From sequence record PP408249.1: a DNA stretch of 64,000 nucleotides; one strand, given 5' to 3'. Within the stretch, counting starts at the first letter, position 1. Each line of letters opens with the position of its first letter. Position numbers and translations under genes: made by a program. Below the pieces are notes generated by a model. It saw only the letters and a list, made by a program, of their open reading frames with translations. It ran no database searches and had not been told where the DNA came from. Positions 1 through 54,952 of the stretch are shown here, one piece after another.

Positions 1-1
1 A

Positions 2-886
2 GAAGAAGGTATAAAATATACAAAGGGAAATATTTCTTCTGGTCATGCAGAAATATCTGAATATGTGCGTTCATTGGGATTTAATGTAATCGACAATGAT
101 CGTACTATTATATTTCCGCGAGAAATTGATATTTTTATTCCCGAACTTAACATAGGAATAGAATACAACGGATTATATTTTCATAGCACACGAACAGAAG
201 GAAATGTAACAAAGCATAGAGAAAAATATAGCATATGTAAACAAAAAGGTATTCGTTTAATACAAATTTTTGAAGATGAATTTATTCATAAGAAAGAACT
301 AGTAAAGAGAAAATTAGCGCACATTTTAGGAAAATCTAATAATAAATGTTATGCAAGGAATTGTATAGTTAAAGAAATATCGGTAGCAGACAAACGAAAT
401 TTCTTTAAAAAATATCACATACAAGAAGATTCTGCATCCTCGTATGCATATGGATTATATTATGATAATGAATTAGTTTGTGCTATGTCTTTTCTTAAAA
501 AGAAGAAATGTACAGAACTAGTTAGATATGCATCTTCTATGCACGTGATCGGCGGATTTTCTAAGTTGTTGAAATATTGTATTAATAATAACAAAATAGA
601 TGTTATAAACACATATGCTGATCTCAGATGGTCGAATCCGACAAATAATGTATATGTAAACAATGGGTTTGATATACTGTATGAGACTGATTTTAATTAC
701 ACTTATGTGAGTAAAGAGGATTTTTCAAAAAGGCTTAATAGGCAAAAATTTATGAAACACAAGTTGAAAAACATTTTATCAGATTTCGATAAATCATTAA
801 CAGAAGAAGAGAATATGAAAAATAATGGATTTTATCGAGTATACGATGCTGGCCATTTAAAATTGCAATATAAGGTTAATAAATGA
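2..886 (+). CDS. Hef-like PD-(D/E)xK homing endonuclease, 5'-partial
   Basis: Frame is open from base 2 (EEGIKYTKGNISSGHAEISEYVRSLG...), so the gene starts outside the window; REIDIFIPELNIGIEYNGLYFHS nuclease motif; LIQIFEDE and ELVRYAS motifs typical of Hef-like phage endonucleases. Confidence 0.75.
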   Translation, partial: EEGIKYTKGNISSGHAEISEYVRSLGFNVIDNDRTIIFPREIDIFIPELNIGIEYNGLYFHSTRTEGNVTKHREKYSICKQKGIRLIQIFEDEFIHKKELVKRKLAHILGKSNNKCYARNCIVKEISVADKRNFFKKYHIQEDSASSYAYGLYYDNELVCAMSFLKKKKCTELVRYASSMHVIGGFSKLLKYCINNNKIDVINTYADLRWSNPTNNVYVNNGFDILYETDFNYTYVSKEDFSKRLNRQKFMKHKLKNILSDFDKSLTEEENMKNNGFYRVYDAGHLKLQYKVNK

Positions 887-1859: not shown

Positions 1860-3311
1860 ATGGCAAAGGATTGCAAATTAGTAATAAAAGATGAAGTAAA
1901 TATTGCATTTACTGGACTTGATATAAACACTCGTAGAAAACTATCTGATTCGTTAAAATTCTTTTTACCTCATGCAAGACACCAACCTGCATACAAGTTA
2001 GGTAGATGGGATGGATGTATTAGGTATTGTGATATAGCCGGACGCTCGTATCTTAATTTTTTAGATATACTTATTCCTATTGTAGAAAATAGTGGTTATT
2101 ATATAACCATAGAAGATAATAGACAACCGTTTTCGTGTAATTTTGAACCAATAGATGCTAACTCATATTCTCATCTTACTTGGCCTGTAGGACATCATTA
2201 TGAAGGGCAGAATATTGTTCTACGGGATTATCAAGTAGAGGCAGTGAATAATTACTTAGCTAATACACAGAGTATAGCAACATTGCCTACTGGTTTTGGA
2301 AAAACATTAGTTACTGCTGCATTAGCACATAAAGTAGAAAAGTATGGAAGAACAATAACAATTGTTCCATCTAAAGACTTAGTTACCCAAACAGAACGGG
2401 ATTTTAAGAACTTCGGATTAGATACTGGCGTTTATTTCGGAGATAGAAAAGAATTAGGCAAAACTCACACTATAGTTACCTGGCAAAGTATTGAAGCTAT
2501 TTATAAACAAAGTAAAGCAGACGAAAATGCATTGACATTAGAAGAATTCATCGAAGGTGTAGTAGCAGTAGTAGTCGATGAAGCACATACCATTAAGGGT
2601 CAATCATTAAAAGAACATTTAACTTCTACATTTGCTAATGTTCCTATTCGATGGGCTATGACAGGAACTATACCAGAAGAGGAACATGCCGCTGCTGCCC
2701 TCATTGCATGCATAGGTCCTGTTACAAAAACTGTGAAAGCAAAAGAATTGCAAGAAGCAGGAATACTTAGTGAATTGCACATAGAAGTCTTACAATTAAA
2801 CGATTATCATACTTCACATCCGAACTATGCAGCCGAATTAAAATTTCTTACTACAGACCCTACTCGTTTAAAATGGCTAGCCGAACATATAAAATCTCAA
2901 GAAGGTAATACGTTAGTGTTAGTTGATAGGCTGTCGAGCGGAGAAGAACTTCTTAAGCATATACCCAATGCTGCATTTGTTAAAGGTGATTTAAAAAGTA
3001 AGGACAGAAGAACTGAATATAAATCAGTTACATCAGATACAGATAAAATTATTATAGCAACCTTTGGGGTTGCATCTACTGGTATTGATATACCATACAT
3101 ACATAATGTATATTTATTAGAACCAGGAAAGTCTTTTATTAGGGTAATTCAGTCTATCGGCCGCGGTCTACGCAAGGCACCTGGAAAAGACTATGTATAT
3201 GTATTTGATATTACTTCTGTTGCAAAATATTCTGCAAGGCATTTAACTAAAAGGAAAAAATTCTATAAAGAAGCAGAATATCCATTTTCTGTGAAAAAAA
3301 TAGATTATTAA
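1860..3311 (+). CDS. uvsW: UvsW-like SF2 DNA helicase
   Basis: LRDYQ, PTGFGKT (Walker A), VDEAH, MTGT, STGIDIP, QSIGRGLR motifs. Confidence 0.9.
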   Translation: MAKDCKLVIKDEVNIAFTGLDINTRRKLSDSLKFFLPHARHQPAYKLGRWDGCIRYCDIAGRSYLNFLDILIPIVENSGYYITIEDNRQPFSCNFEPIDANSYSHLTWPVGHHYEGQNIVLRDYQVEAVNNYLANTQSIATLPTGFGKTLVTAALAHKVEKYGRTITIVPSKDLVTQTERDFKNFGLDTGVYFGDRKELGKTHTIVTWQSIEAIYKQSKADENALTLEEFIEGVVAVVVDEAHTIKGQSLKEHLTSTFANVPIRWAMTGTIPEEEHAAAALIACIGPVTKTVKAKELQEAGILSELHIEVLQLNDYHTSHPNYAAELKFLTTDPTRLKWLAEHIKSQEGNTLVLVDRLSSGEELLKHIPNAAFVKGDLKSKDRRTEYKSVTSDTDKIIIATFGVASTGIDIPYIHNVYLLEPGKSFIRVIQSIGRGLRKAPGKDYVYVFDITSVAKYSARHLTKRKKFYKEAEYPFSVKKIDY

Positions 3312-4078: not shown

Positions 4079-4545
4079 TGGCAGAAGAAAGCATTTTACC
4101 GCTTTGGATGGAATTACAAGCATTAGATTATAATGATAGAGATTTTTATGACAAGTTAACTGATGAACAGAAGAAAGTATTTTCATCGTGGATTATAATG
4201 AGATATTCTAGTAATATAATCGGTGATAATGCAGATTGGGGTCTTATAATGACCAATGATATTGTAAATGTGGATTTTTCATTAATGTACAAGCATCCTA
4301 AACTGCAATGGATGCTATTGTCGTTGTGTGGAACTGGAAGAAAAGAACAACGTAAATGGATTGCCCCAAATAAAAAGAAAAAAAAGAATCCGAGGAAAGA
4401 ATTTATTTTTAAAATTCATCCAAACGCAAAAGATGACGAAATTGATATGCTTGCAGATTTGTACACTGATGCAGAATTAAAGGATATTATGTTATCCTAC
4501 GGATATGAAGATAAAGAAATAAAAGATATTTTAAAGAAGAAATAA
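4078..4545 (+). CDS. clamp loader small subunit (T4 gp62-like)
   Basis: DFYDKLTDEQKKVFSSWIIMRYSS, HPKLQWMLL and KWIAP motifs. Confidence 0.7.
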   Translation: MAEESILPLWMELQALDYNDRDFYDKLTDEQKKVFSSWIIMRYSSNIIGDNADWGLIMTNDIVNVDFSLMYKHPKLQWMLLSLCGTGRKEQRKWIAPNKKKKKNPRKEFIFKIHPNAKDDEIDMLADLYTDAELKDIMLSYGYEDKEIKDILKKK

Positions 4546-4558
4546 TTCTAGTAAGTAT

Positions 4559-5266
4559 ATGCAAGCATCTAAGAAAAATAAAAAGGCAACATCGATGGCA
4601 AAGTGCGAGTTTTGTAGTAAAGAATTTAAGTCAGAACGAACAATAGCTGCTCATTTGTGTGTTAAAAAGAAGAGGTTTGCAGAAAAAGACACAGTCGGGT
4701 CTAGACTGGGATTTAGGGTATTTCAGCGATTCTACGAACTAACTACTTCTTCTAAAACACCTAAATCTTTTAGAGAATTTATTGATAGTAAATTTTATAT
4801 AGATTTTGTTAAATTTGGAAGACACCTAATAGATATTAATCCTATTAACACAGATGAATACATAGATTTCATAATAAAGAACGCTATACCGCTGTCTGAT
4901 TGGAAAAAAGACTATGTATATGTAAGATATCTTAAAGAATATACTCAGAAAGAACCTGCACAAAAAGCACTAGAACGAACTATAATCGAGATGGGCACTT
5001 GGTGTACTGAAAATAATGTAGATATTGTAGATTTTTTTGAAAAAGTTAATACAGTAGAGGCAGTATATCTTATTAAATCAGGAAAGCTTAGTCCGTGGGT
5101 ATTATATCTGGCATCTTCTTCTGATAAATTGTGGGTTAGAATAAATGAAGAACAAGAAAAATTTATTCAAACTGCTGTAGATTTTGATTGGTGGCAAAAG
5201 AAATTTATTGCAAATAAGGATGATGTTGACTTTATAGTGTCTGTATTGACAGAGGCTAAGTTGTAA
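4559..5266 (+). CDS. zinc-finger protein
   Basis: N-terminal CEFCSKEFKSERTIAAHLC C2H2-like finger. Confidence 0.65.
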   Translation: MQASKKNKKATSMAKCEFCSKEFKSERTIAAHLCVKKKRFAEKDTVGSRLGFRVFQRFYELTTSSKTPKSFREFIDSKFYIDFVKFGRHLIDINPINTDEYIDFIIKNAIPLSDWKKDYVYVRYLKEYTQKEPAQKALERTIIEMGTWCTENNVDIVDFFEKVNTVEAVYLIKSGKLSPWVLYLASSSDKLWVRINEEQEKFIQTAVDFDWWQKKFIANKDDVDFIVSVLTEAKL

Positions 5267-5267
5267 T

Positions 5268-5870
5268 ATGGCAAAAGTGGTTACTGATGTTGATATTGAC
5301 GTAGCAGATAGGTTAACAGTTTTGTCTGGACTACAACACATATCTGCTAAATTAGACGGAGTGGGAAAGAAACATTTATCTGGTGTATATTTTCAACCTA
5401 TTCCGTTTGATCCGGAACAAAATATGAGCAACATAGATTATAAAGTTGCAGAAGAATTAGGCTACATGAAGATTGATCTTCTTAACGTGAGTATATACGA
5501 ACAAGTTAGATCGGAGGAACATCTAAAGAAATTAATAGATAAAGAACCTAACTGGTCTTATTTTGAACATAAACAGATAGTTCAAAATTTATTTCATTTA
5601 GGAAATTATGCTGATCTGGCAGTAGGAATGAAACCGAAAAGTGTAGAACAGTTAGCAATGTTGCTGGCTGTTATACGTCCGAGTAAGTATCATTTACAAT
5701 ATAAACCTTGGGATATTATTGCCAAAACTGTGTGGGATAAGCCCAGCGACGGGTCATATCATTTTAAAAAAGCACATGCCATTAGTTATGCACTTGCAAT
5801 TGTTGTTCAGTTGAATTTATTAGAAGAAGAAGCAGAACAAGAACCCGATCCATTTAAGTTATTTTCCTGA
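5268..5870 (+). CDS. family C (DnaE-like) DNA polymerase, catalytic palm half
   Basis: TDVDID, KKHLSGVY, GYMKIDLL, LAVIRP, FKKAHAISYA match DnaE PDFDVD, KHAAGV, KFDFL, ALFRP, FNKSHSAAYA. Confidence 0.85.
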   Translation: MAKVVTDVDIDVADRLTVLSGLQHISAKLDGVGKKHLSGVYFQPIPFDPEQNMSNIDYKVAEELGYMKIDLLNVSIYEQVRSEEHLKKLIDKEPNWSYFEHKQIVQNLFHLGNYADLAVGMKPKSVEQLAMLLAVIRPSKYHLQYKPWDIIAKTVWDKPSDGSYHFKKAHAISYALAIVVQLNLLEEEAEQEPDPFKLFS

Positions 5871-6252
5871 TTAAAGATACTTGTCGTCTTTTTATTCTCT
5901 TTTTGAGCATATTGTTAAGAGAAGTACATGGTCCGAAAACTATTTTTATATCTTTGTTTACTAGGGTTTTTAGGCAATATCTAAATTCTGCCATTTCGTT
6001 TGGCATGAATATATTTATTGGTAATATCCTAGAAGATTCCCACCACCAACAGTCACCACATTGAAGAAATATATCTTTGTGTTGACTGTTTTTTAATGAT
6101 TTAAAATCATAAAAACTTATATATTTGTCATCCGAGTTTTGAATAATTCCTATATAAAAATTTTCTAAGTGTTGTATGCCACTTAAAAATGGAAATTTTT
6201 CAGATAATTCTGCTAACTCTTGATCTATTGTATTATTATTTGTGTTGTCCAT
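5854..6252 (-). CDS. hypothetical protein
   Basis: 132 aa ORF filling the gap, divergent from 6315 with an AATAAATA motif upstream. Confidence 0.7.
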   Translation of the reverse strand: MDNTNNNTIDQELAELSEKFPFLSGIQHLENFYIGIIQNSDDKYISFYDFKSLKNSQHKDIFLQCGDCWWWESSRILPINIFMPNEMAEFRYCLKTLVNKDIKIVFGPCTSLNNMLKKRIKRRQVSLIRKIT

Positions 6253-6301
6253 GATTTTCTTCTCTCTTTATTATTTATTCCTTTAACACTAACCGTTTTA
6301 A

Positions 6302-6309
6302 TATAAATA
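6302..6309 (+). promoter_or_regulatory. T4-type late promoter TATAAATA
   Basis: Exact T4 late consensus, intergenic, 5 nt before ATG 6315. Confidence 0.6.
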
Positions 6310-6314
6310 CGTGT

Positions 6315-7184
6315 ATGACATTCCATACATTATATAAATATGATAATTTTGTAGAACTGTTATATGATAACGGTATACTTTCTTGCAATTGTAAATTATT
6401 GGATAATAGACCTATGCATTCACAAACAATAAAACTATACAAAGGTGTAGATAATCAAGTAAAATTTAGGGTTTATAATCCTGATAGACGATTAGTAAAC
6501 ATTCATGGACTTTCTGTGTTTGCTAGTTTAATTAATACAGAAAATAAAGAACGAGTGCTAGTAAAACAGTGTGATATATATGAGCAGTCTCCTGGAATTT
6601 TTATATTGTCTATATTAGAAGGAGATCTAATAAATGTGCCTAATGGATATTACACTTTGAGTATAATAGGACAAGAAGAATTTATTCCCGGCATATCTAA
6701 TATAGACGGACTCCCTGTAATTAGTACGCCGTTTTATACAAATACATCATCTGATATACAACTGTATGCAGAAGTTAGAGATAGTTTAGAAAAGGCGCCC
6801 ATAGACACTATAGTTGCTACTGAATGGCGAAAAGTAATAAACACTGATTATACTTTTAATTATTACAATGCAGGTCCATTTCCATCTAATAGAGTAAAAA
6901 ATTATAGATCGGGTGTGCATACTATTGCAATATATGCAGAAAATTTCACAGGTAAATTTGAAGTATATGGTACATTAGACCAAATTCCTTCGCTAGAAGA
7001 TGAATTTAGTTCTTGGTTTCCGATTAATTTAAGATCTATGTTTGATTATATTCAGTTTAATAATTTCACTGGAATAATGCCATACACTTTTCAAGCAAAT
7101 GTTCTTTGGTTAAAATTCCGTTGGTATCCGGATTCGACAATCCCAAACAATGGAGAAATTTCTAAAGTAATGTTAAGAAGTTAA
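6315..7184 (+). CDS. probable virion/baseplate protein (BppU N-terminal-like plus beta-rich C-domain)
   Basis: LYKGVDNQVKFRVYNPDRR...GYYTLSI pattern; late promoter; C-domain similar to 57290..57724. Confidence 0.55.
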   Translation: MTFHTLYKYDNFVELLYDNGILSCNCKLLDNRPMHSQTIKLYKGVDNQVKFRVYNPDRRLVNIHGLSVFASLINTENKERVLVKQCDIYEQSPGIFILSILEGDLINVPNGYYTLSIIGQEEFIPGISNIDGLPVISTPFYTNTSSDIQLYAEVRDSLEKAPIDTIVATEWRKVINTDYTFNYYNAGPFPSNRVKNYRSGVHTIAIYAENFTGKFEVYGTLDQIPSLEDEFSSWFPINLRSMFDYIQFNNFTGIMPYTFQANVLWLKFRWYPDSTIPNNGEISKVMLRS

Positions 7185-7219: not shown

Positions 7220-8242
7220 GTGATTAGCGAACTTTTAAAACAAGAAATAACTTCTAGACTTCCGTATTTAAAGCCAGGAAACAAAGGATGGTTAGTTTGT
7301 AATTGTCCTTTGTGTGTCGCTATGGGTACAACTGCTGATAAGCGAAAACGGTTCGGTGTTATGTTTGAATCGGATGGAACAATAGGGGTCCATTGCTTTA
7401 ACTGTACATTTGTAACAAAATGGACTCCGGGGACTCTGATAGGAGAGAAAATAGAGTTCCTTCTACGACATATAGGTACATCCGATGATGATATTCGTAA
7501 ACTTAAATTCCAGGCATTTAGAGAGAAAGAAGCAGGAGACATATTTAAAACTCCCGAACTAGAATTAAGTATTAAAACTAATTGGACTACTACTAGTCTT
7601 CCTAAAAATTCTAAACCTATATTAGAATGGTTAGAAATATCTCCTAATGATCCCAATCTTCTTAAATGTGCAATGTATGCCTTATCTAGAGGATTTCCGG
7701 ATATGTCTAATATATACTGGTCACCCTCTCAGAAATTTTTATGGAATAAACGAATAATACTTCCGTTCACATATAATGGAAAAGTTGTAGGATATTGCGG
7801 AAGATATTTTGAAGAACAACCAAATGAATTAGAAATAAGAAGATATGAAAATAGATTCCCTGAACATTTTGTGTATGGGTTAGATTCCCAAAGATCCTAC
7901 AATAGAAAATATGTTATACTAACGGAAGGAGTAATAGATGCTATAATGGTAGATGGAGTATCTACCATGGGTTCTGTAAGTAAACATCAAGCAAATATAA
8001 TAAACTCGCTAGGCAAAGAAATAATAGTATTGCCTGATTTTGATAGTAACGGCAGTCATTTAGTAGATTCTGCTTTAGAATATAACTGGTATGTATCATT
8101 TCCTAATTGGGATAATAATATAAAAGATGCTAGCGAAGCATCCCAAAAATATGGAAGATTACTTACAGTTCAGAGTATTATATACGGTATAGAACGGAAT
8201 TCTACTGCCATACGAATTAAAAGAAAAATAAAAGGAATATAG
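7220..8242 (+). CDS. DNA primase (gp61/DnaG-like)
   Basis: CPLC...HCFNC zinc ribbon; TOPRIM LTEGVIDA and LPDFD; IKDASE; GTG at 7214 or 7220. Confidence 0.85.
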   Translation: MISELLKQEITSRLPYLKPGNKGWLVCNCPLCVAMGTTADKRKRFGVMFESDGTIGVHCFNCTFVTKWTPGTLIGEKIEFLLRHIGTSDDDIRKLKFQAFREKEAGDIFKTPELELSIKTNWTTTSLPKNSKPILEWLEISPNDPNLLKCAMYALSRGFPDMSNIYWSPSQKFLWNKRIILPFTYNGKVVGYCGRYFEEQPNELEIRRYENRFPEHFVYGLDSQRSYNRKYVILTEGVIDAIMVDGVSTMGSVSKHQANIINSLGKEIIVLPDFDSNGSHLVDSALEYNWYVSFPNWDNNIKDASEASQKYGRLLTVQSIIYGIERNSTAIRIKRKIKGI

Positions 8243-8243
8243 T

Positions 8244-9683
8244 GTGAAACAAAACAAAGACGTAGTAAAGGATTATAATACTGGCGTAGAAGATTTGTTT
8301 ATAAAATTTTTCTTAACTGACCCAGAATTGTTTATTAGATGCCGATCTATAATACAACGAGACCACTATTCGGATAAGATTAACCAAAAAGTTATAGATT
8401 TTCTAAATGAACATGCAGATAAACATAGTACTCTTCCTACTGTAGAACAAGTATCTGCCATAACAGGAAAATCATTTGAGTTATTAGATAACATACATGA
8501 TAGCCACAAAAATTGGTTTTTGGAAGAATACGAAACATTTGCTAGGCATAAACAACTAGAGAATGTAATATTAGAGTCTCCTGATTTATTAGTTACTGGT
8601 CGGTACGGAGAAGTTGAACAAAAAGTTAAGAATGCAGTTTCTATTGCATTAGTTAAAGATTTAGGTACTGATTATTTTGGAGATCCACTGTCCAGACTTA
8701 ATGCCATTAAAGACAGAAAATCGTTAGTGTCGACTGGCATGAAAGATTTAGATGCAAAACTGTACGGTGGTTTTGAGCGAGGCGCCCTAAATATTTTTGC
8801 AGGACAATCGGGCGCTGGCAAATCTATATTCCTACAAAATATAGGATTAAATTGGGCTATAGCAGGACTTAACGTAGTTTACCTTAGTTTAGAATTAAGC
8901 GAAAACTTATGTTCTATGCGCATAGATTCTATGAACACAGGTATTGATACAAAAGAAGTTTTACGCAGGGTAGATGACGTAGCTATAAAAGTTATTGAAT
9001 CTAAAAAGAAAACTAAAGGCTCCCTTCGAATTAAGCAATTACCTAACGGTTGTACAGCCAACGATATACGTTCTTATATAAAAGAATACGAAATTCAAAC
9101 AGGATTAAAAGTAGATGCAATAATGTTAGACTATTTGGATTTGTGTATGCCTATAAGTAAAAAGGTAAGTCCATCGGATCTGTTTGTTAAAGACAAATAC
9201 GTTTCTGAAGAATTAAGGAACTTAGCAGTCGAGCTTCAAATTCTATTAGTCACTGCATCGCAGTTAAACAGAAATTCACACGAATCTGTAGATTTTGGAC
9301 ATGAACACATTTCCGGAGGTATTTCTAAGATTAATACTGCCGATAATGTAATAGCTATTTTTACAACGCAAGCTATGAGAGAAAATGGAAGATATCAAAT
9401 TCAATTTCTTAAAACACGTTCGTCGTCGGGCGTCGGGCAGAAAGTAGATCTTGCGTTTGATCAAAGAACACTAAGATTATCTGATTTAGATCCAGAACAA
9501 GCTAGCGCATTATCCGAGAATACAAGGAGTGTTATTGATAAACTCCGCGCAGATAGGTCATTAGACACACCTAATAATAAAGATACTCATGTACAAAAGA
9601 CACCTGTTATTGAACAAAAACCGGCAGAATCTATGGTAGAAAAAAGTGCCCGGCTTCGTAATCTACTTAGCGGCAACAGATAA
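8244..9683 (+). CDS. replicative DNA helicase (gp41/DnaB-like)
   Basis: GQSGAGKS Walker A, LDYLD, TASQLNR, KTRSS. Confidence 0.9.
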   Translation: MKQNKDVVKDYNTGVEDLFIKFFLTDPELFIRCRSIIQRDHYSDKINQKVIDFLNEHADKHSTLPTVEQVSAITGKSFELLDNIHDSHKNWFLEEYETFARHKQLENVILESPDLLVTGRYGEVEQKVKNAVSIALVKDLGTDYFGDPLSRLNAIKDRKSLVSTGMKDLDAKLYGGFERGALNIFAGQSGAGKSIFLQNIGLNWAIAGLNVVYLSLELSENLCSMRIDSMNTGIDTKEVLRRVDDVAIKVIESKKKTKGSLRIKQLPNGCTANDIRSYIKEYEIQTGLKVDAIMLDYLDLCMPISKKVSPSDLFVKDKYVSEELRNLAVELQILLVTASQLNRNSHESVDFGHEHISGGISKINTADNVIAIFTTQAMRENGRYQIQFLKTRSSSGVGQKVDLAFDQRTLRLSDLDPEQASALSENTRSVIDKLRADRSLDTPNNKDTHVQKTPVIEQKPAESMVEKSARLRNLLSGNR

Positions 9684-29779: not shown

Positions 29780-30469
29780 GTGTCGTTAAACAAAACTAAA
29801 ACTGATGCCGAACTAGGCAAAAAAGTACAGCAATATTTAATCCAACAAGGAGTAGAAACTCCTATGCAAGAGCAAACTCTAAACGTTAAAGAGCGGATAG
29901 ATAAAATTGAATCTCATTTTGTTGAAATTATGAATGCACTTGCGTTGGATCTTTCCGACGATAGTCTTGCAGAAACGCCTCGCCGAGTAGCAAAAATGTA
30001 TGTATCTGAGATATTTTACGGGTTGGATTATGAGGCATTTCCTAAATGCACCACTATTGAAAATAAATTTAATGCAAATGAAATGGTCTTAGTAAAAGAT
30101 ATAGATTTATATTCTCAGTGTGAACATCATATTTTACCAATAATTTCTGGATCATCTTCCGGCCGGGGTGGAATATCAGTTGCTTATATTCCTAAAAATA
30201 AAGTAATAGGTCTCTCTAAATTAAATAGAGTGGCAGAATTTTTCTGCAAGCGACCTCAAGTTCAAGAACGACTCACATTGCAAATATTTCATGCATTACG
30301 GTATATTCTGGAAACAGACGATGTTGCTGTTTTAATTAACGGAAGGCATCTGTGTGTGGAATCTAGGGGCGTAGAAGATACAAGTTCGAGTACGATAACT
30401 TCTAAATTAAGTGGTGCATTTAGCAACGATCCTGCCACCCGTGCAGAATTTATGTCTCTTGTAAAATAA
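29780..30469 (+). CDS. folE: GTP cyclohydrolase I
   Basis: ETPRRVAKMY, SQCEHH, GLSKLNR, RPQVQERLT, HLCVESRG; GGAGG SD and GTG start. Confidence 0.95.
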   Translation: MSLNKTKTDAELGKKVQQYLIQQGVETPMQEQTLNVKERIDKIESHFVEIMNALALDLSDDSLAETPRRVAKMYVSEIFYGLDYEAFPKCTTIENKFNANEMVLVKDIDLYSQCEHHILPIISGSSSGRGGISVAYIPKNKVIGLSKLNRVAEFFCKRPQVQERLTLQIFHALRYILETDDVAVLINGRHLCVESRGVEDTSSSTITSKLSGAFSNDPATRAEFMSLVK

Positions 30470-30473
30470 CAAA

Positions 30474-30506
30474 AACTACTATGGATAGGACCTATCCATA
30501 GTAGTT
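30474..30506. repeat. 16-bp inverted repeat with 1-nt spacer
   Basis: AACTACTATGGATAGG-A-CCTATCCATAGTAGTT. Confidence 0.85.
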
Positions 30507-30536
30507 ACACATAGCATATTAATAAGGAATATAAAA

Positions 30537-31055
30537 TTGTGGCAGATTAATAAAAGTTTCAGTTTTGCATATGCTCACAGAGTCCATAATCAACACTTAG
30601 ATGCAGATTTAGTTGAAGACACCAAATGCAAATGCAGGCATTTACACGGACATACAGGTAAAGTAGTTATTCATTTAACTGGAACTTCTTTAGTAAACGG
30701 TATGGTAACTGATTTTAAGCATTTAGGTTTTCTTAAAAAATTTATAGATGACGTAATCGACCATAAGTTTATTATAGATGCAAACGATCCTAATTTTAGT
30801 AAGATAACCAATGCATCTAAATATTCTACTATAAGTTTTGAGCACTATGGAATATTCGATACATCTGAAGAGACAGTAGAACACGAAAAGGAACATGCAG
30901 ATAGTTTTGTAATAGTAGATTTTGTTCCTACTGCAGAAAATTTAGCTAAATGGATTTGGGAATATGCTGAAAGCATTTTAGAACAAAAAGGTATAACTGT
31001 TTCTAAAGTAGAATGGTGGGAAACTGATAAAGCTTGTGCAACATATATTGCATAA
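30537..31055 (+). CDS. queD: 6-carboxytetrahydropterin synthase
   Basis: FAYAHR, CRHLHGH, GMVTDF, IDHK, PTAENLA, WET. Confidence 0.9.
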   Translation: MWQINKSFSFAYAHRVHNQHLDADLVEDTKCKCRHLHGHTGKVVIHLTGTSLVNGMVTDFKHLGFLKKFIDDVIDHKFIIDANDPNFSKITNASKYSTISFEHYGIFDTSEETVEHEKEHADSFVIVDFVPTAENLAKWIWEYAESILEQKGITVSKVEWWETDKACATYIA

Positions 31056-31072
31056 TATAAAGGTAGATATAA

Positions 31073-32299
31073 ATGTCGAAAGAAACATGCTCTTATTGCA
31101 ATAAAGGCAAAGATGATGTGTCTAAGTTGTTTCGTAGCCCTGCTAAATATGGATCAAATGTATATATATGTGACCAGTGTGTAACTCAGTGCAACAATTT
31201 TTTAGAAACTGCCGAAACAAATGATCAGGAATCTAATAAATTAGAAATAAAATACACACCTGAAGAATTAAAGGAATTGCTAGATAAAGACATTGTAGGG
31301 CAAGATCACGCAAAAGAATTACTAAGTCTAGCGGTGTATAATCACTATAAACGGGTAAACTATAACACCACTGAACACGATGTAGAGTTATCTAAATCTA
31401 ACATAATGCTACTGGGACCCTCAGGTAGCGGTAAGACATTTTTAATATCTAGTATATCTAAATTGTTAAACATACCTTTTGTTTCTGTAGATTCTACTTC
31501 GCTAACAGAGGCAGGATATGTCGGCGATCATGTAGAGACTATATTTACTAGATTAATCGCAGAAGCAAATGGTGACATAGAACTAGCGCAACGTGGAATC
31601 GTATTTATAGATGAAATAGATAAGAAGCGTTCTAAAAAAGGAACAAATTCTGCAGGATCTGATGTTTCCGGCGAAGGCGTCCAACAGTCTTTACTTCGGG
31701 TGCTAGAAGGAACAACGATTAAATTAGAACTAAATTCTAACAGTATGTTTAGTCCTAGACAGGAAATTATGTTTGACACAACTAACGTTTTGTTTATAGT
31801 TGGCGGCGCATTTATAGGATTAGATGCAGTAATAAATAAAAGACTTAGTTCTACTAAATCTCAAATGGGATTTGGTTCCGAAGCTGGTAAACCCATAGAA
31901 GGTAGTTTATTCTATGTAGAACCGGAAGATTTGTATACATACGGTTTTATAAGAGAATTTGTAGGAAGATTTCCTGTTCTTATTGCGTTTCATGATGTAA
32001 CAGAGACTATGCTTCGTCGAATTCTAGTAGAGCCTAAAAGTTCTATACTTAAACAATATCAAACTATGTTTAAATTAGATAACATTGAATTAGAATTCGA
32101 TGAAGATTTTATAAAATCTGTTGCTACTACAGCGTTTAATAGGAAAACAGGCGCTCGTGGTTTAAGAACTATTTTAGAAAAAGAACTATCTAGTATAGCA
32201 TATAGATTGCCTTCTATAAGACGAGAAGGGTTTAGCAAGATTATTATACACGAACTAGGAAAACATAATTTCATAAAAGGGCAAAATGAAGACATTTAA
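31073..32299 (+). CDS. clpX: ClpX AAA+ unfoldase
   Basis: CSYC...CDQC zinc-binding domain, GPSGSGKT, GYVG, DEIDK, DVSGEGVQQSLL, MGF loop, GARGLR. Confidence 0.95.
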   Translation: MSKETCSYCNKGKDDVSKLFRSPAKYGSNVYICDQCVTQCNNFLETAETNDQESNKLEIKYTPEELKELLDKDIVGQDHAKELLSLAVYNHYKRVNYNTTEHDVELSKSNIMLLGPSGSGKTFLISSISKLLNIPFVSVDSTSLTEAGYVGDHVETIFTRLIAEANGDIELAQRGIVFIDEIDKKRSKKGTNSAGSDVSGEGVQQSLLRVLEGTTIKLELNSNSMFSPRQEIMFDTTNVLFIVGGAFIGLDAVINKRLSSTKSQMGFGSEAGKPIEGSLFYVEPEDLYTYGFIREFVGRFPVLIAFHDVTETMLRRILVEPKSSILKQYQTMFKLDNIELEFDEDFIKSVATTAFNRKTGARGLRTILEKELSSIAYRLPSIRREGFSKIIIHELGKHNFIKGQNEDI

Positions 32300-32492
32300 T
32301 ATAATTACTGGTCTTACTGTAGAAGTAAGACACGATAACTTTAACCAAGCACTTAGAACTTTTACTAAAAAGGTTCAAAATTCAGGAAAATTAAAAGAAG
32401 TTCGAGAACGCGAATTCTATGAAAAGCCTTCTGTAAAAAAGACAAAAGCTAAAAAAGCAGCAATTCAACGCCAGAAAAAGAAAAAAATATAA
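32286..32492 (+). CDS. rpsU: ribosomal protein bS21
   Basis: VEVRHDNFNQALRTFTKKV...EVREREFYEKPSVKK..KKAA..R. Confidence 0.92.
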   Translation: MKTFNIITGLTVEVRHDNFNQALRTFTKKVQNSGKLKEVREREFYEKPSVKKTKAKKAAIQRQKKKKI

Positions 32493-36489: not shown

Positions 36490-38220
36490 ATGCAACATAT
36501 TGTTAAGTTCATAAAAAATAACAGATTTATTATTTTATTTCTTGTAATATGCATAACTGGATTTGCGTTAACGATTAATTACAAGCCGACTAGTGTGTCT
36601 ATAAACACCTTTTTATCAGACGCATCGAGCGGTAAAATAATTAGTGTTAAATTAAAAGAAGATGGACAAACACTACAGTATGTTACTAACACATCAGACA
36701 GAAGAAAAGTAACATTCCCCGGAGATACCAGTAAATTAATAGAATCATTTCTTAAAGCAGGTGTTCCTGTAGTAACTGAAGAACCTTCTACCCCTAGTCC
36801 ATTCCTTACTAGTTTGGTGTCTGGACTTATAGTAATGTTAGTATTTTTAATTTTAATGGTATTCGTTTTGAAGCGAATGGGTCCTGGTTCTTCATTAGAT
36901 GCAAAAAGTAAATCCAAACTTCGCAAGATAGAACCAAAAGACATTGAAGTAACGTTTAACGATGTAGCTGGTCATACTCACGAAATAAATGAAGTAAAAG
37001 AGTTAGTTGATTTTATTGCTCATCGAACTAAGTATTCTAGCATGGGAATAGATGTGCCTCGTGGAATTCTAATGCACGGCAGTCCGGGCGTCGGGAAAAC
37101 ACTTTTAGCAAAGGCAATGGCAAAAGAGGCAAATGTTAATTTTTTCTATGTTGCTGGATCTGAGTTTAATGATACATTTGTCGGTGTAGGTGCAAACCGT
37201 GTAACAGATATGTTTAAAAAAGCAAAGGAAGCTGCGCCGTGCATTATTTTCATAGACGAAATTGATGCACTTGCACAACAACGTTCTACTAAAATATCTA
37301 ATGGGTCAGACCAAACACTCAATCAGTTATTAGTAGAAATGGATGGAATGCAAGATAACGATGGTATTACAATTCTTGCAGCTACTAATAGACTAGATAT
37401 ATTAGACCCGGCTGTTATTCGTCCTAAACGATTTGACAGAATTGTTCAACTAAGTTTACCTGATGTGGGGATTAGACAGAAGATTTTAGAAATAAATGCA
37501 AATGGAAAAACATTTGAAGACAATGTAGATTTTTCAGTAATAGCAAAAGGAACTCCGGGATTCTCTGGTGCTGAGTTAGCTAAACTAGTCAATGAGGCTG
37601 CAATCTATGCAGTAAGGTCTGGGCAAACTGTAATTACCCAGGAGCATGTAGAACGAGCAAAAGATAAGGTGTTAATGGGTGAAAATTCGACAAAGAAATA
37701 TACCCAAGAAGAATTGCTTCGTACTGCATATCATGAAGCCGGTCATGCAATATCGGGTGTAATTTACAAATCTAATGATAACTTGCATAAAGTATCTATC
37801 ATTCCTCGAGGTCTAGCACTAGGTGTAACTGTATTTCTTCCTAACGAAGAGCCTTCTGTTAGCAAAGAGCAGCTCATGAATAAATTAGTTACGTTAATGG
37901 CAGGCCGCGCAGCAGAAGAACTCATATACGGTGAATCTGCAATATCCACTGGCGCTAGTTCAGATATAAAGAGAGCAACCGAACTTGCAGTATACATGAC
38001 TACATCGTGTGGTTTCGGTAGTATAGGACCGGTTGCGACATCGACCCTGTCTAGTTTGCAATCTAGTGCAGAACAAGATGCAGCAATTCTAGTAAAAGAT
38101 GCGTACAATAAGGCCATAACATTACTTTCGGATAAAAAGGCTGAATTAAAACTTGTAGCAGACTTGTTAATGGAAAAAGAAACAATAGATTGTGCAGAAG
38201 TAGAACAAGTTCTTGCATAA
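36490..38220 (+). CDS. ftsH: FtsH membrane AAA+ metalloprotease
   Basis: Two N-terminal TM segments, GSPGVGKT, FVGVG, DEID, TNR...RPKRFDR, HEAGH, GASSDI. Confidence 0.95.
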   Translation: MQHIVKFIKNNRFIILFLVICITGFALTINYKPTSVSINTFLSDASSGKIISVKLKEDGQTLQYVTNTSDRRKVTFPGDTSKLIESFLKAGVPVVTEEPSTPSPFLTSLVSGLIVMLVFLILMVFVLKRMGPGSSLDAKSKSKLRKIEPKDIEVTFNDVAGHTHEINEVKELVDFIAHRTKYSSMGIDVPRGILMHGSPGVGKTLLAKAMAKEANVNFFYVAGSEFNDTFVGVGANRVTDMFKKAKEAAPCIIFIDEIDALAQQRSTKISNGSDQTLNQLLVEMDGMQDNDGITILAATNRLDILDPAVIRPKRFDRIVQLSLPDVGIRQKILEINANGKTFEDNVDFSVIAKGTPGFSGAELAKLVNEAAIYAVRSGQTVITQEHVERAKDKVLMGENSTKKYTQEELLRTAYHEAGHAISGVIYKSNDNLHKVSIIPRGLALGVTVFLPNEEPSVSKEQLMNKLVTLMAGRAAEELIYGESAISTGASSDIKRATELAVYMTTSCGFGSIGPVATSTLSSLQSSAEQDAAILVKDAYNKAITLLSDKKAELKLVADLLMEKETIDCAEVEQVLA

Positions 38221-40414: not shown

Positions 40415-41188
40415 ATGACACCACGTTTAAAAGAATTACTAGAATCACTTATAATTTTAGATACAGAAACTACACATTTAGATACTCGTGTAGCAGAAAT
40501 AATAGAATTAGGTATAGCGTCTTATACTAACAAATGGACTTATAGTAGTGAATTATTTAAACCCAGAGTTAATCATGCGCAAATAACTCCTAAAATAAGT
40601 TCTATAACTGGCATAACAGATCGTATGGTAGAAGGAAAACCTACTTTTGCCGATGTAGTCGACCAATACAAATCTATTACAAACTGCCAATTAATAGTTG
40701 CACACAATGCTCCGTATGATAAAAAGGTATTAGAGAGATATAACATAGCATCTAGCACTAATTGGTTGTGTACTTTAAAACTTGCACGATATGCATATCA
40801 AACCGATCCTACTTTTGAAGAATTTAAATTATCTTATCTAAGATATAAATTAATGTTAGATATTCCTGACGATTTCGTAGCGCATAGAGCAGGAGAAGAT
40901 GCATATATGTGCGGTGTATTATTAGAACGAATAGTAACTGATTTAGAGTCTAAGAATAAATTAGATAGTGATATACCGTATGCAGATCAACTTATAGAAA
41001 TATCTAATAAGCCGTTAATGCTTTCGTCTATGCCATTTGGCAAACATAAAGATAAACCCTTAGATGAAGTTCCAATGGACTATTGGATTTGGGCATTAAA
41101 TAATTTAGATGCATTAGACGAAACAAAACCCGAATATAATAGAGACTTAGCGTATACATTAGAACAATATTTGAGCGACAAGATATAA
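40415..41188 (+). CDS. DEDDh 3'-5' exonuclease (ExoX/DnaQ-like)
   Basis: LDTETT, VAHNAPYD, HRAGEDA; C-terminal MPFGKHK domain. Confidence 0.88.
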   Translation: MTPRLKELLESLIILDTETTHLDTRVAEIIELGIASYTNKWTYSSELFKPRVNHAQITPKISSITGITDRMVEGKPTFADVVDQYKSITNCQLIVAHNAPYDKKVLERYNIASSTNWLCTLKLARYAYQTDPTFEEFKLSYLRYKLMLDIPDDFVAHRAGEDAYMCGVLLERIVTDLESKNKLDSDIPYADQLIEISNKPLMLSSMPFGKHKDKPLDEVPMDYWIWALNNLDALDETKPEYNRDLAYTLEQYLSDKI

Positions 41189-41678: not shown

Positions 41679-42350
41679 ATGAGCTACAATTATACAGCAC
41701 AAGGACAATATCCTACCGAAGCTGGTTTGATTCCCATGGTTGTCGAAAATAACGGCAACGGCGAACGTAGCTGGGATATTTATTCCCGTCTTCTAAAAGA
41801 GCGCATTGTTTTTCTTAATGGTCCAGTTCGCGACGAAATGGCATCCGTAATTGTTGCCCAGCTTCTTTTCCTCGAATCAGAATCGGCAGAACAGCCCGTT
41901 TCGATGTATATTAATTCTCCGGGCGGCAGCGTTACTGCTGGCTTGTCTATTTACAACACGATGGAATATATTTCGTGTCCCGTTAATACCATCGTGTTAG
42001 GCCAAGCATGCAGTATGGGGTCTTTCCTAGCACAAGCAGGTACTCCGGGGCATCGTTATGTGTCTAGCGAATCCCGCACTATGATTCATCGAGCCAGCGG
42101 CGGCTTCGGGGGATTCGGCGGCACAACTCAACAAGTTGAGTTAGGAATCGAAGATGCTGTCCGCCATGCAGCAGAACTATCTAAAATTAACAAGCGTCTC
42201 ACTGAGCTGTATGTCCATCATAACACTGCCGGCAAGACGTTCGACGAATTTATCGAAATTATGAAATTCGACACATTCCTCTCTGCTCAAGAAGCAGTTG
42301 AGTTCGGGTTGGCAGACAAAGTATTCCGCACTAAAGCTGACCTGAAGTAA
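41679..42350 (+). CDS. clpP: ClpP serine protease
   Basis: [35 protein letters not shown] (Ser), MIH (His), DTF (Asp). Confidence 0.96.
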
Positions 42351-48154: not shown

Positions 48155-48862
48155 ATGTTTGCTGACGTACAAGGGTTTTATTCTTTTAAAAGAAAATTTA
48201 AAACACACGTTCTTACTTCTGTATTGAAAGAAACTGAATGGGAAATTATAATTGGATTCGTTCCTGCAAAGGATGCAAGCAACGGAGAAGATTTAATTGA
48301 TTTTGAAGTTCAAAAAAATATAATAGATTACTGGATTTCTAATTACGTAGAAGGCAGTATTATCGTCGATATGAGCGATACTAGAATTTCTATGTTGTAT
48401 GATATAGCAGAAAATAACATAATAGGTGTTCCTAGTTTTCCTAAAGATTTAAAAACGCTAGCAATGGTTTTTCATTCTAAGATTTCATCTATAACAGATG
48501 GCAAGCTATCTATAGGTGACATTATTATATCAGACGATAGTAATTTTAGTTACACATTCGGAAAACATGTAGATGAAATATACGATCTTCCTACAATAGA
48601 CGATATGTTTCCTAACGAAGATGAAAAACCCATATGGGACGTGCCGTGGTGGGATAGGGTCGATGTAGATACATTTGATTATGTTCCTGATTTAGAAAAT
48701 CGTACATTAGAAGAAGTACAAATGTCTGTTTGTACAAGACATGTGTTAAATGATATTAACGATAAGTTCGAAGCTGCAATAAAAGAAGAATTAGGTATAA
48801 ATGTAGAAACTGAAGACAATGTTATAGACATAGTTGATGTTTTAAATGAACGACAAATATAA
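48155..48862 (+). CDS. hypothetical protein, possible degenerate QueD-like T-fold
   Basis: LIDF...WISNYVEGSIIVD...PSFPKDLKTLA aligns by eye with QueD VTDF...FIDDVIDHKFIID...FVPTAENLA; no His ligands. Confidence 0.45.
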   Translation: MFADVQGFYSFKRKFKTHVLTSVLKETEWEIIIGFVPAKDASNGEDLIDFEVQKNIIDYWISNYVEGSIIVDMSDTRISMLYDIAENNIIGVPSFPKDLKTLAMVFHSKISSITDGKLSIGDIIISDDSNFSYTFGKHVDEIYDLPTIDDMFPNEDEKPIWDVPWWDRVDVDTFDYVPDLENRTLEEVQMSVCTRHVLNDINDKFEAAIKEELGINVETEDNVIDIVDVLNERQI

Positions 48863-49355
48863 TAGAAAAGAAATAACTATATCAACAGGCATAAATATCC
48901 TTTTGCAAGGGAACCAGCTGGGAGATCCACTCTTTGTTGACAACGAAGACATAAACAAGTATAATATGCACGTAGAACAAGTGTTAGGGTTGCATAAACT
49001 TAATACGACGAAACACTTAACTTGTTCTGTTGATGAATTTCATGAAAAAATGTCTTCAGAATGGTTTATGCCACCGGAATTTAAAAATATAGATATAGAT
49101 TCTTTTATATTAAATTTATGTGACACTGATGCACAAAAAGAAAGAGTATTAATGGAACTGAAACTCTTTCAAGAACGCGGTTTATACAATATGCTAAGAT
49201 TTATGATATATTTTGTATCATATATGAGGGAAAATTGCCTTATCTGGGGTGTGGGTCGCGGGTCTAGTGTTGCGTCTTATGTATTATTTTTAATAGGCGT
49301 GCATAAAGTAGATTCACTAAAATATAATTTAGATATAAAAGAATTTCTAAAATAA
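48846..49355 (+). CDS. family C (DnaE-like) DNA polymerase, N-terminal palm/thumb half
   Basis: ERVLMEL, IWGVGRGSSVASYVLFLIGVHKVDSLKYNLDIKEFLK matches DnaE [33 protein letters not shown]. Confidence 0.85.
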   Translation: MNDKYNRKEITISTGINILLQGNQLGDPLFVDNEDINKYNMHVEQVLGLHKLNTTKHLTCSVDEFHEKMSSEWFMPPEFKNIDIDSFILNLCDTDAQKERVLMELKLFQERGLYNMLRFMIYFVSYMRENCLIWGVGRGSSVASYVLFLIGVHKVDSLKYNLDIKEFLK

Positions 49356-49710: not shown

Positions 49711-50037
49711 ATGAATATAATACCACTCCATAACAATATTATTGTAACTAATTTTAAAAAAGGCGAACGCACTGTAGGCGGTATTATTTTTACAGATGAT
49801 AACGGTAAGTCACACGGCATCCGCGCTCGGTGGGCACAAGTATCCCATATAAGAGAAGATCAAAAAGATACATTTGTTGTAGGCCAATGGGTGTTAATTA
49901 AGCATGGTCGCTGGTCCCGTCCAGTACACACTACAGATCAAAATGTATATTACTGTGCTGAAATAGATTCTATTTTATTGGTATCCGATGAAGAGCCAGA
50001 AGACAATATAATAGTAGAAACACGAGTTTATAATTAA
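49711..50037 (+). CDS. groES: GroES-like co-chaperonin (gp31-like role)
   Basis: IIPLHNNIIV, ERTVGGII mobile loop, VGQWVL, IDSILLV. Confidence 0.75.
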   Translation: MNIIPLHNNIIVTNFKKGERTVGGIIFTDDNGKSHGIRARWAQVSHIREDQKDTFVVGQWVLIKHGRWSRPVHTTDQNVYYCAEIDSILLVSDEEPEDNIIVETRVYN

Positions 50038-50050
50038 GGCATAATATCTA

Positions 50051-50980
50051 ATGAAAGAATTATGGACAGAAAAATATCGTCCTAAAAAAGTAGAAGATTA
50101 CGTATTTACTAGTGAACAACAAAAGAAGCAAGTACAAAGTTGGATAGACAATAAAAGTATTGGAAATCTTTTGCTTACTGGTACACCTGGTGTAGGCAAA
50201 ACTACTTTAGCTAGGTTACTGTTAAATGAATTAGGAGTAATGGATGCCGATTGTCTGTTCATTAACGCATCTAGAGATAACGGTGTAGATTTTATTAGGG
50301 ACACAGTTAGTGGGTTTGCTTCTACATTACCGTTCGGCGATTTTAAATATATTATACTAGATGAGTGCGACCATTTAAGTATAAATGCACAAGCAACACT
50401 TCGTGGAATATTAGAGCAATATTCAAATTCTTGTAGATTTATTCTTACAGGTAATTATCAAAATAAAATTATCCCTGCATTACATAGTCGTTGTCAGAGT
50501 TTCCACGTAGAAAAAGTAGATGAAGTCGAATTTACTACACGAATGGCGACTATACTTTTAAATGAAGGCATTAGTTTTGAATTAGAAGTGTTAGACGATT
50601 TCGTAAAATCTACGTATCCTGATCTTAGAAAATGCATTAATGTACTTCAGCAGAATACAACTAGTGGTGTATTAGAAATACCGCAAGCATCTAGTGTAAC
50701 AACAGAAGATTATAAGATTAGTGCAATTGCTCTGTTTAAAAATGGAAAATATTCCGAAGCAAGGCAACTTATATGTAAACAAATACGACAAGAAGAGTAT
50801 GATGATATGTATAGGTTTATGTATGATAATTTAGATCTTTGGGGTGACACTGATGATCAAAAAGATAGTGCAATTCTTATTATTAGAAATGGTCTATCTA
50901 AACACTCATTAGTTGCTGATCCGGAAATAAACTTATCGGCAACAATTATAGAACTAGAACGAAACAGACGAGGACTTTAA
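50051..50980 (+). CDS. clamp loader large subunit (gp44/RFC-like)
   Basis: WTEKYRP, GTPGVGKT, NASRDNG, LDECD, ALHSRC, DLRK. Confidence 0.92.
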   Translation: MKELWTEKYRPKKVEDYVFTSEQQKKQVQSWIDNKSIGNLLLTGTPGVGKTTLARLLLNELGVMDADCLFINASRDNGVDFIRDTVSGFASTLPFGDFKYIILDECDHLSINAQATLRGILEQYSNSCRFILTGNYQNKIIPALHSRCQSFHVEKVDEVEFTTRMATILLNEGISFELEVLDDFVKSTYPDLRKCINVLQQNTTSGVLEIPQASSVTTEDYKISAIALFKNGKYSEARQLICKQIRQEEYDDMYRFMYDNLDLWGDTDDQKDSAILIIRNGLSKHSLVADPEINLSATIIELERNRRGL

Positions 50981-54253: not shown

Positions 54254-54943
54254 ATGAAGAATTGGCAAACAATCCTTGGCGTATCTGCTAATCCCACAGA
54301 AAAACAGATAAAGACTGCATACAGAAAACTTGCATCAAAATATCATCCTGACAGAAATAAAGATAAAGATGCAGAAAACATGTTTAAACAAGTAAGGGAA
54401 GCATACGAATATGCAATAAAATGGATTTCTATTAAAACAGAACAATACACAGATACAGTATATATTCCATTAAAATACCAAAATAAAGGCGGCAAATTCA
54501 AGACATCTAATCATAAATTTATTATAGAAATTCCGCCACATTTCCCTCATAATTCACAAAAAATAATAATAGTAAACAATTCTATATTATTAGTTACTGT
54601 AATATTCATACATGATACATTTTCTATAGCTCAAAATGGCATAGATGTATATGCAACTATTTCTGTAGAAAGTCTCGACATAATTATGGGCACAGAAATA
54701 ATAGTTGAGCATCCGTACGGAAATAAGATAAAAGTAGGTATACCTACATCATTTGTATCTGGATCTAAAATACTAGTGAAGAATAAAGGTATTAAGAATA
54801 CATATACAGTAAACAATATTTTAGAAACCATAACAGGTCATTTGTATATAACTGTCAACATGTTCACAAAAGTTCGTTTGACTAAAAGCAGCGATACTAG
54901 TATACTACTAACGTACAAAGCAAAACCATACACAATCTCGTAA
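54254..54943 (+). CDS. DnaJ/CbpA-like J-domain co-chaperone
   Basis: [21 protein letters not shown] (HPD), C-terminal DnaJ_C-like region with GHLYI. Confidence 0.88.
54878..54906 (+). promoter_or_regulatory. sigma70 promoter for clpA inside the J-protein 3' end
   Basis: TTGACT-17-TATACT. Confidence 0.65.
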
Positions 54944-54952
54944 GGGGTACAC

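Follow-up and report, generated by a model that had tools for sequence, protein, structure and literature searches.

The 64,000-nucleotide stretch of DNA analysed here (the window) comes from Pseudomonas phage vB_Pa-PAC2 (PP408249.1), a member of the PA5oct group, and its first base is base 124001 of that record. PAC2 is a T4-like, non-nucleus-forming jumbo myovirus of P. aeruginosa (Arenbergviridae, Wroclawvirus) with a genome of 286 kb; window bases 4500-6300 are 100% identical to PAC2 and 99-99.8% identical to PA5oct, MIJ3, Callisto, Paride and their relatives. Two open reading frames (ORFs) on the plus strand of the window are the subject of this work, both of them labelled as DNA polymerase in GenBank records and PHROGs. 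The first, at 5268..5870, encodes the C-terminal half of a minimal family C (DnaE-like) polymerase (C-half; 200 amino acids, N-terminus MAKVVTDVDID), and the second, at 48846..49355, encodes the N-terminal half (N-half; 169 amino acids, ending in KEFLK and a stop codon). They lie 43,578 bp apart from start to start, as described in a first-pass annotation that placed the two ORFs about 43 kb apart, and their combined length is 369 amino acids. We consider it fairly likely that the two proteins form a two-subunit DNA polymerase, predicted to be accessory to the family B polymerase (PolB) of the phage.

The N-half could be assigned to family C directly. It matched Pfam PF07733 (DNA_pol3_alpha) over profile positions 21-94 with an E-value of 4e-9 and 36.9 bits (score cut-off 23.9 bits), matched phrog_11127 ('DNA polymerase') with an E-value of 8e-46, and matched the DNA polymerase III (Pol III) alpha chains of Thermus, M. 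tuberculosis and E. coli in sequence searches. In a profile of 60 relatives, positions 102-174 aligned with residues 320-392 of E. coli alpha and ended in FERFL. Residues ~95-169 of the N-half thus correspond to residues ~320-393 of E. coli alpha, which comprise the helical palm scaffold and the GRGS loop that binds the incoming deoxynucleoside triphosphate (dNTP), and residues 1-94 form an N-terminal region specific to the family.

The C-half had no match in the Pfam search and matched phrog_11778 ('DNA polymerase') with an E-value of 2e-63. As a single-sequence query it gave PDB matches at chance level only, and a family profile was required; the profile of 95 relatives matched Pol III alpha chains exclusively (E-value 3e-5). 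The aligned stretches of E. coli alpha were 400-418 (with PDFDVD, a weak, negative-scoring stretch), 539-641 (with KFD) and 740-768 (with FNKSH). In the C-half itself, the DxD motif begins six residues after the start and is followed further on by the KxD motif and two finger segments, R137-P138 and Y164...K167-K168-x-H170. Judged at the level of sequence, the E-values for the family C homology of the two halves exclude chance.

On phrog_405, the family of full-length phage DnaE proteins, the N-half fell on positions 362-429 and the C-half on positions 579-679; the two are therefore in the right order and free of overlap. In E. coli numbering, the N-half stops at about residue 393 (N393) and the C-half starts at about residue 395, six residues before the first catalytic aspartate, D401.

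The position of the break was confirmed by natural fused forms. When the C-half was searched with phmmer against 1.84 billion cluster representatives, 368 matches were obtained, nearly all of them stand-alone proteins of 185-215 amino acids and one of them the fused protein P0198. Three metagenomic proteins from three assemblies (P0198, P0271 and P0272; 375-376 amino acids, 78-81% identity) were fused chains consisting of an N-half, four residues and a C-half. In P0198 (375 amino acids), residues 80-180 are 44% identical to the N-half of the window and residues 189-372 match the C-half. In the alignment from which the junction was read (alignment A3), K169 of the N-half pairs with K180 of P0198 and M1 of the C-half pairs with G185, leaving 4 residues of P0198 outside both halves. 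This alignment was used after checking, as alignments of the fused proteins with many half-length sequences either misplaced N-halves over the C-half or pulled the junction apart; different set sizes were compared with MAFFT. The four-residue junction excludes an intein and indicates that the halves are parts of one enzyme. Together with the order on phrog_405, it bears out the earlier claims that the halves are contiguous segments of a family C palm and that the break has neither overlap nor intein; neither half had an intein or Hint match in Pfam.

In a tree of C-halves, the three fused proteins formed one clade (support 100) nested within the stand-alone C-halves (support 99). The fusion thus arose secondarily, which means that the halves can work in a single chain and, within the sampled family, that the split state is the older one. 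The fused gene also sits in the gene context of a C-half, followed by the antisense ORF and then by the next conserved ORF (locus L189). In the closest split relative of the fused clade (locus L190), a 200-amino-acid ORF directly upstream of the C-half was considered as a candidate N-half, but it was found to be a homologue of the C2H2 zinc-finger protein described below.

The AlphaFold2 model of P0198, built on alignment A3, had a mean predicted local distance difference test score (pLDDT) of 87.5 and a predicted template-modelling (TM) score of 0.86, with the first 70 residues less certain. In Foldseek searches of the PDB its 16 best matches were all family C enzymes (Pol III alpha of Thermus, E. 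coli and M. tuberculosis, and PolC), the top 14 with E-values from 2e-8 to 4e-4 and query-normalised TM-scores of 0.46-0.59. Cid1, CCA-adding and poly(A) enzymes matched the model with E-values of about 0.5 or worse, the next PDB matches (Cid1 and CCA-adding enzymes) being at about 1 or worse. The C-half of the window alone was modelled with a pLDDT of 95.2, and its 14 best PDB matches were all Pol III alpha, individually weak (E-values 0.003-0.24). In both models, the DxD strand leads through a beta-hairpin almost directly into the KxD strand, and the thumb insertion is absent. Against BFVD, the P0198 model matched phage DnaE-type polymerases and one N-half of 173 amino acids. The BFVD matches also included two proteins of Pseudomonas phage PA5 named 'DNA polymerase III alpha' (A0A1J0MHX4 and A0A1J0MHX0; 466 and 569 amino acids), which matched different parts of the model and may represent a different, larger split of a phage DnaE.

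The roles of the active-site residues were taken from a preprint on the E. coli Pol III ternary complex determined by cryo-electron microscopy (10.64898/2026.06.29.735100), and their conservation was counted in the 60 N-half and 95 C-half relatives. The N-half loop G137-R138-G139-S140 is invariant (60/60), and R138, G139 and S140 correspond to E. coli R362, G363 and S364, which bind the incoming dNTP. In the C-half, D7, D9, K68 and D70 are invariant (95/95). The three aspartates align here with the catalytic aspartates D401, D403 and D555, so the claim that all three had been kept in the DxD and KxD motifs stands, and the G-S loop and three acidic residues of a Pol-beta-like palm are all in place; K68 corresponds to K553, which contacts the primer phosphate. 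R137 (94/95) and P138 (95/95) are the counterparts of R639 and P640, which lie against the templating nucleotide, and H170 (93/95) is the counterpart of H760, the steric gate that excludes ribonucleoside triphosphates (rNTPs). Y164 (69 of the 95) corresponds to the finger tyrosine six residues before the gate that stacks on the incoming nucleotide, which is printed as Tyr745 in the preprint and is Y754 in our alignment numbering. The active-site residues are invariant among relatives that share only 35-55% identity.

Two dNTP contacts of the E. coli enzyme have not been kept. R390, whose replacement by alanine lowered the efficiency of E. coli Pol III 27-fold (10.64898/2026.06.29.735100), is represented in the N-half by a glutamate (E166; glutamate in 58/60), and the segment carrying R710, which may interact with the dNTP, is absent. 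The nucleotide pocket is therefore not identical to that of DnaE. Overall, the residues that are kept are those expected of a polymerase that is DNA-templated and selective for dNTPs, with a triphosphate pocket that has changed somewhat, and the pattern argues against an untemplated transferase or an RNA-making enzyme. Untemplated synthesis and RNA primer synthesis, which had been among the activities proposed earlier, are less likely given the near-invariance of the template-contacting R137 and P138 and of the steric-gate H170.

Profile alignments and models gave no counterparts in either half for the thumb, the full fingers, the clamp motif, the HhH and OB domains or the tau-binding region. 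The stretches of E. coli alpha without a counterpart are ~419-538 (thumb), 642-739 and everything after ~780. For the PHP domain, no PF02811 match was found in either half or in the adjacent ORFs, and only 94 residues precede the palm of the N-half. The description of a miniature enzyme of about 370 amino acids without PHP, most of the fingers, HhH/OB and clamp-binding regions was thus accurate. A clamp-binding C-terminal tail was considered, as the C-half has an acidic stretch followed by PFKLFS that recalls the tail of T4 gp43, but it is not conserved: a hydrophobic-aromatic pair occurs in the last ten residues of 28 of the 95 C-half relatives, and the tail lengths and sequences are unrelated.

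Selection and gene context were examined in samples of 80 IMG/VR loci per half (160 in total), drawn from at least 600 loci for each half. The first-pass annotation had named frameshift or pseudogene signatures and a lack of purifying selection across relatives as counter-evidence. All sampled ORFs were intact (80/80 for the C-half, median 190 amino acids; 80/80 for the N-half, median 173) and uniform in length, and the median pairwise ratio of non-synonymous to synonymous substitution (dN/dS) was 0.18 over 116 C-half pairs and 0.16 over 353 N-half pairs, which indicates purifying selection on both. Broken copies were seen in the record of Escherichia phage CMSTMSU (MH494197.1), where the C-half match is in three pieces and the N-half match covers 21% of the length; these reflect either sequencing errors or real decay in that record.

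The two halves occur together. Using tblastn on GenBank phage records, the C-half was found in 96 and the N-half in 98, with nearly the same counts by host (C-half/N-half: Escherichia 34/34, Pseudomonas 11/11, Klebsiella 11/10, Salmonella 8/8, Erwinia 8/8), and the surplus N-half matches were weak ones to full-length DnaE genes of Bacillus phages. Among the 60 best C-half records, 58 were also among the N-half matches listed, and one of the other two was a partial record of 109 kb. In these phages the halves are two stand-alone proteins from distant genes, which are on the same strand in every case. The spacing ranges from 15 kb in XacN1, where the N-half comes first, through ~30-42 kb in RaK2/121Q-like phages and 43.6 kb in the PA5oct group to 182 kb in Atu_ph07 and 224 kb in Phosso. 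Of the 160 IMG/VR loci retrieved, none had both halves within 6 kb. The closest unfused pair seen was on a contig of a metagenome-assembled genome (JAHEYR010000170.1), with the N-half at 3-440 and the start of the C-half at 6266-6439, 5.8 kb apart on one strand with the N-half first.

In a collection of 5.8 billion proteins, the N-half search returned 5542 matches. A scan of 185,579 species genomes with the C-half family found 19 loci, all in metagenome-assembled bins from unrelated phyla. These are most likely mis-binned phage contigs, and those examined carry phage gene context; the family is viral.

Each half has its own conserved gene neighbourhood. The order around the C-half is UvsY, UvsW, three ORFs, a C2H2 protein, the C-half, an antisense ORF, another ORF, primase and helicase; around the N-half it is the N-half, a small ORF, a GroES-like protein and a clamp loader. 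Of the neighbours given with coordinates in this paragraph and the next, all but the antisense ORF are on the plus strand. Downstream of the C-half are a gp61-like primase (7322..8242; 70/80 IMG/VR loci) and a gp41-like primase/helicase (8244..9683; 61/80). Upstream lies the UvsW helicase (1860..3311), with UvsY just before it, found in 45/80 loci, a count limited by locus ends. Downstream of the N-half are the GroES-like protein (49711..50037; 75/80) and a gp44/RFC-like clamp loader (50051..50980; 62/80). The C-half order up to primase and helicase is also present in RaK2 and Atu_ph07, with UvsW in RaK2, and the N-half array is present in both phages. Each half is thus a constant member of a different block of replication genes.

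Three less familiar ORFs adjoin the halves. The C2H2 zinc-finger protein (4559..5266; phrog_11058, function unknown) ends 1 nucleotide before the start codon of the C-half. A homologue was found upstream of the C-half in 72/80 loci, mostly not adjacent (median offset -1136 nucleotides) but usually separated from it by a further small ORF, and in RaK2 one extra ORF lies between the two; this protein could be a replisome or DNA-binding partner. The antisense ORF (5854..6252, minus strand; 132 amino acids, phrog_11637, function unknown, no Pfam match) is convergent with the C-half and overlaps its last 17 nucleotides. Only two other genes annotated in the window's first 32 kb are on the minus strand, and a homologue of the antisense ORF was present in 77/80 C-half loci, always on the opposite strand. 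At the other half, the last 17 nucleotides of a plus-strand ORF of 235 amino acids (48155..48862) overlap the start of the N-half. It was considered as a PHP remnant and rejected; it is specific to the PA5oct lineage, because it belongs to no Pfam or PHROG family and had a homologue in 0/80 N-half loci.

A separate replicase, which the first-pass annotation had recommended searching for, was found elsewhere in the genome. A T4 gp43-like PolB is encoded in two pieces (record positions 201926-204337 and 206013-207152), with a homing-endonuclease gene between them and a PCNA-like clamp gene after them, 14-19 kb past the end of the window. This fits the earlier suggestion that the miniature polymerase may not be the main replicase. 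The same T4-like jumbo myovirus carries PolB, UvsW, an OB-fold single-stranded DNA-binding protein, and the clamp and clamp loader, a co-occurrence that rests on GenBank annotations with Pfam and PHROG checks for some genes. The window also holds a DnaQ/RNase T-type 3'-5' exonuclease (40415..41188, plus strand; PF00929, E-value 1e-17; phrog_192, 'DNA polymerase exonuclease subunit'), which is annotated as 'DNA polymerase III' despite this identity. It was considered as a linked partner and rejected, having been near neither half in any of the 160 loci.

Further genes of the genome were noted alongside. A RecA-like gene just upstream of the window is annotated as two pieces, with Hef-like homing-endonuclease genes beside it (window 1..886; record 120052-124886); another such endonuclease gene is the one between the PolB pieces. 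The 7-deazaguanine pathway is represented at 29864..31055 by GTP cyclohydrolase I and 6-carboxytetrahydropterin synthase, with QueE outside the window (record 212772-213644), which fits the deazaguanine DNA modification reported for PA5oct. The window also carries an unusual host-like set of protein-quality-control genes (ClpX, FtsH with a partner membrane protein, ClpP, GroES-like, DnaJ and ClpA) together with ribosomal protein S21, at 31073..32492, 36490..38220, 41679..42350, 49711..50037 and 54254..57172; these identities are those of GenBank, the GroES-like gene alone having been checked.

Split DnaE-like genes were already known in jumbo phages. In its passages on the group 2.2 jumbo phages, the study of Iyer, Anantharaman, Krishnan, Burroughs and Aravind (2021, Viruses 13:63, PMC7824862) describes a phage-specific minimal Pol III alpha whose N-terminal, NTP-binding part and C-terminal, Mg- and template-binding part are separate proteins, encoded by distant genes alongside a family B polymerase and without the other Pol III domains, with PA5oct in the data set. 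The same passages suggest that it cooperates with PolB in the synthesis of one strand or in repair, and treat it as a model of an ancestral enzyme. As far as it is described there, the pair in PAC2 is the same thing, with no essential difference, and its existence and architecture are not new. No fused forms, quantified gene order or selection, residue map based on the ternary complex, or DnaQ-like exonuclease of this genome were seen in those passages; fused forms, conserved gene order and a residue map were not found in the rest of the literature searched either. The present analysis adds the fused forms and the junction at residue level, puts figures on gene order, selection and pairing, and argues from the template contact and the steric gate. 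Elsewhere, PF07733 has been noted as the marker of a marine jumbo-phage cluster (Weinheimer and Aylward 2022, PMC9123017).

Compared with bacterial DnaE and PolC (PDB 2hnh, 2hpi, 3e0d, 3f2b), the mini Pol III shares the palm, the GS loop, the three aspartates, the equivalent of Lys553, the Arg-Pro pair, the finger tyrosine and the steric-gate histidine. It differs in being one third of the size and made of two chains, in having glutamate at the equivalent of R390, in missing residues 642-739, and in lacking the PHP domain, thumb, beta-clamp motif, HhH, OB and tau-binding region. The cyanobacterial dnaE-n and dnaE-c genes likewise give a family C polymerase from two distant genes, but that enzyme is full length and its halves are ligated by protein trans-splicing, whereas neither half here has an N-intein or C-intein and the break is in the palm just before the DxD strand. 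In B. subtilis, DnaE cooperates with primase and helicase before PolC takes over (PMC3664799). It may offer a functional parallel as a second, non-proofreading family C polymerase beside the main replicase, given that the C-half gene neighbours those for primase and helicase. B. subtilis DnaE is full length, however, and the main replicase of the phage belongs to family B. In the same phage group, PolB is interrupted by a homing endonuclease, as reported for MIJ3 (Imam et al. 2019, PMC6892783). The pieces of the interrupted PolB and RecA-like genes are adjacent with a mobile endonuclease or intein gene between them, whereas the Pol III halves are 43 kb apart, have no mobile element at either end and are split in the same way in very distant phages. 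The fractured RecA-like and PolB genes therefore differ in kind from the Pol III split.

Taken together, these results can be explained by a two-subunit enzyme. Each half would be translated separately and the two would then assemble non-covalently. The N-half would contribute the helical side of the Pol-beta-like palm and the GRGS loop holding the incoming dNTP. The C-half would contribute the beta-sheet with the three metal-binding aspartates and the primer-phosphate lysine, together with the Arg-Pro pair touching the template base and a finger helix-loop-helix with the stacking tyrosine and the steric-gate histidine. The product is most likely a DNA-templated, dNTP-specific polymerase. Lacking a thumb, a proofreading PHP domain and a recognisable clamp motif, it would probably be distributive. 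It would act as an accessory beside the T4-like PolB, most likely in short-patch synthesis at the fork, where primers would be extended next to primase and helicase and then handed off, or in recombination-dependent replication and repair. Physical association of the halves is highly probable on the basis of the fused forms, the co-occurrence and the single-chain model, and we have good confidence, from the conserved residues and the models, that the pair would be catalytically active as a DNA polymerase. The accessory short-patch role is proposed with moderate confidence.

Several points weigh against this explanation. The dNTP-contacting arginine has become a glutamate and the R710-bearing segment is gone; neither a thumb nor a conserved clamp-binding tail with which it could hold DNA was found; the alignment behind the P0198 model had just three rows spanning both halves; and no biochemical or genetic study of mini Pol III was found in the literature. 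The gene neighbourhoods suggest a replisome role and do not prove it, as long collinear T4-like modules are syntenic throughout.

Another explanation would be that mini Pol III is a true co-replicase, processive on one strand while PolB copies the other, which is one of the options suggested by Iyer et al. (2021). All phages of this group have it, its genes lie within replisome gene arrays, its catalytic and fidelity-related residues are conserved, and the DnaQ-like exonuclease could in principle proofread for it. Such an enzyme would have to be processive with 369 amino acids, compared with ~1160 in processive DnaE, and it has no thumb, clamp-binding motif, conserved C-terminal tail or PHP domain on which an epsilon-like exonuclease could dock. 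In addition, the DnaQ-like gene is near neither half in the 160 loci, and the phage has a complete T4-type set of PolB, clamp and clamp loader. We therefore regard a co-replicase as improbable.

Slightly less probable still is a nucleotidyltransferase of another chemistry (untemplated tailing, RNA primers, nucleotide signalling or DNA modification) that shares only the Pol-beta-like core, or two halves that act separately. Many members of the Pol-beta-like superfamily are transferases other than polymerases, the pair lacks the thumb and half of the fingers as well as R390 and the R710 segment, and DNA modification is heavy in this phage, as seen from the 7-deazaguanine genes in the window and from the passages of PMC7824862 on these phages. 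However, the only significant fold matches are to family C DNA polymerases, and the template-contacting Arg-Pro pair and the rNTP-excluding histidine are near-invariant. Separate action of the halves is opposed by the fusion and by their co-occurrence.

Joining after translation by a split intein, or RNA trans-splicing, is very unlikely. Distant split dnaE genes are the classic case of split inteins, and the same phage has PolB and RecA-like genes interrupted by inteins or homing endonucleases, but the 4 unmatched residues leave no room for an N-intein of ~100 or a C-intein of ~35 amino acids, no intein or Hint match was obtained in Pfam, and the lengths are uniform in the 160 loci. That the halves are pseudogenes, decaying fragments of a captured dnaE, might be thought from their small size, the lack of a Pfam match for the C-half and the broken copies in CMSTMSU, but it is refuted by the selection analysis (160/160 ORFs intact and low dN/dS in both halves), by active-site residues that stay invariant at 35-55% identity, and by the 5542 N-half matches and 368 C-half cluster representatives in protein databases.

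Within the preferred reading of a two-subunit accessory polymerase, a more specific and rather speculative possibility is a dedicated hand-off polymerase that docks on the primase/helicase, extends each primer briefly and passes it to clamp-bound PolB. If this were true, mini Pol III would play in these viruses the part that Pol alpha plays in eukaryotes and DnaE in B. subtilis. It would also be the smallest family C polymerase in nature and could serve as a working model of the ancestral core of the bacterial replicase, in line with the speculation in the passages of Iyer et al. on these phages.

To our knowledge, the pair described here would be the smallest natural family C core, made of two pieces and cut through the catalytic domain. 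If it is active, it would define the minimum needed for DnaE-type catalysis and would mean that some task can be carried out without thumb, PHP domain or clamp contact. Among large T4-like phages, few unexplained replication genes are as widespread as this pair, whose role bears on how labour is divided between two polymerases in these viruses.

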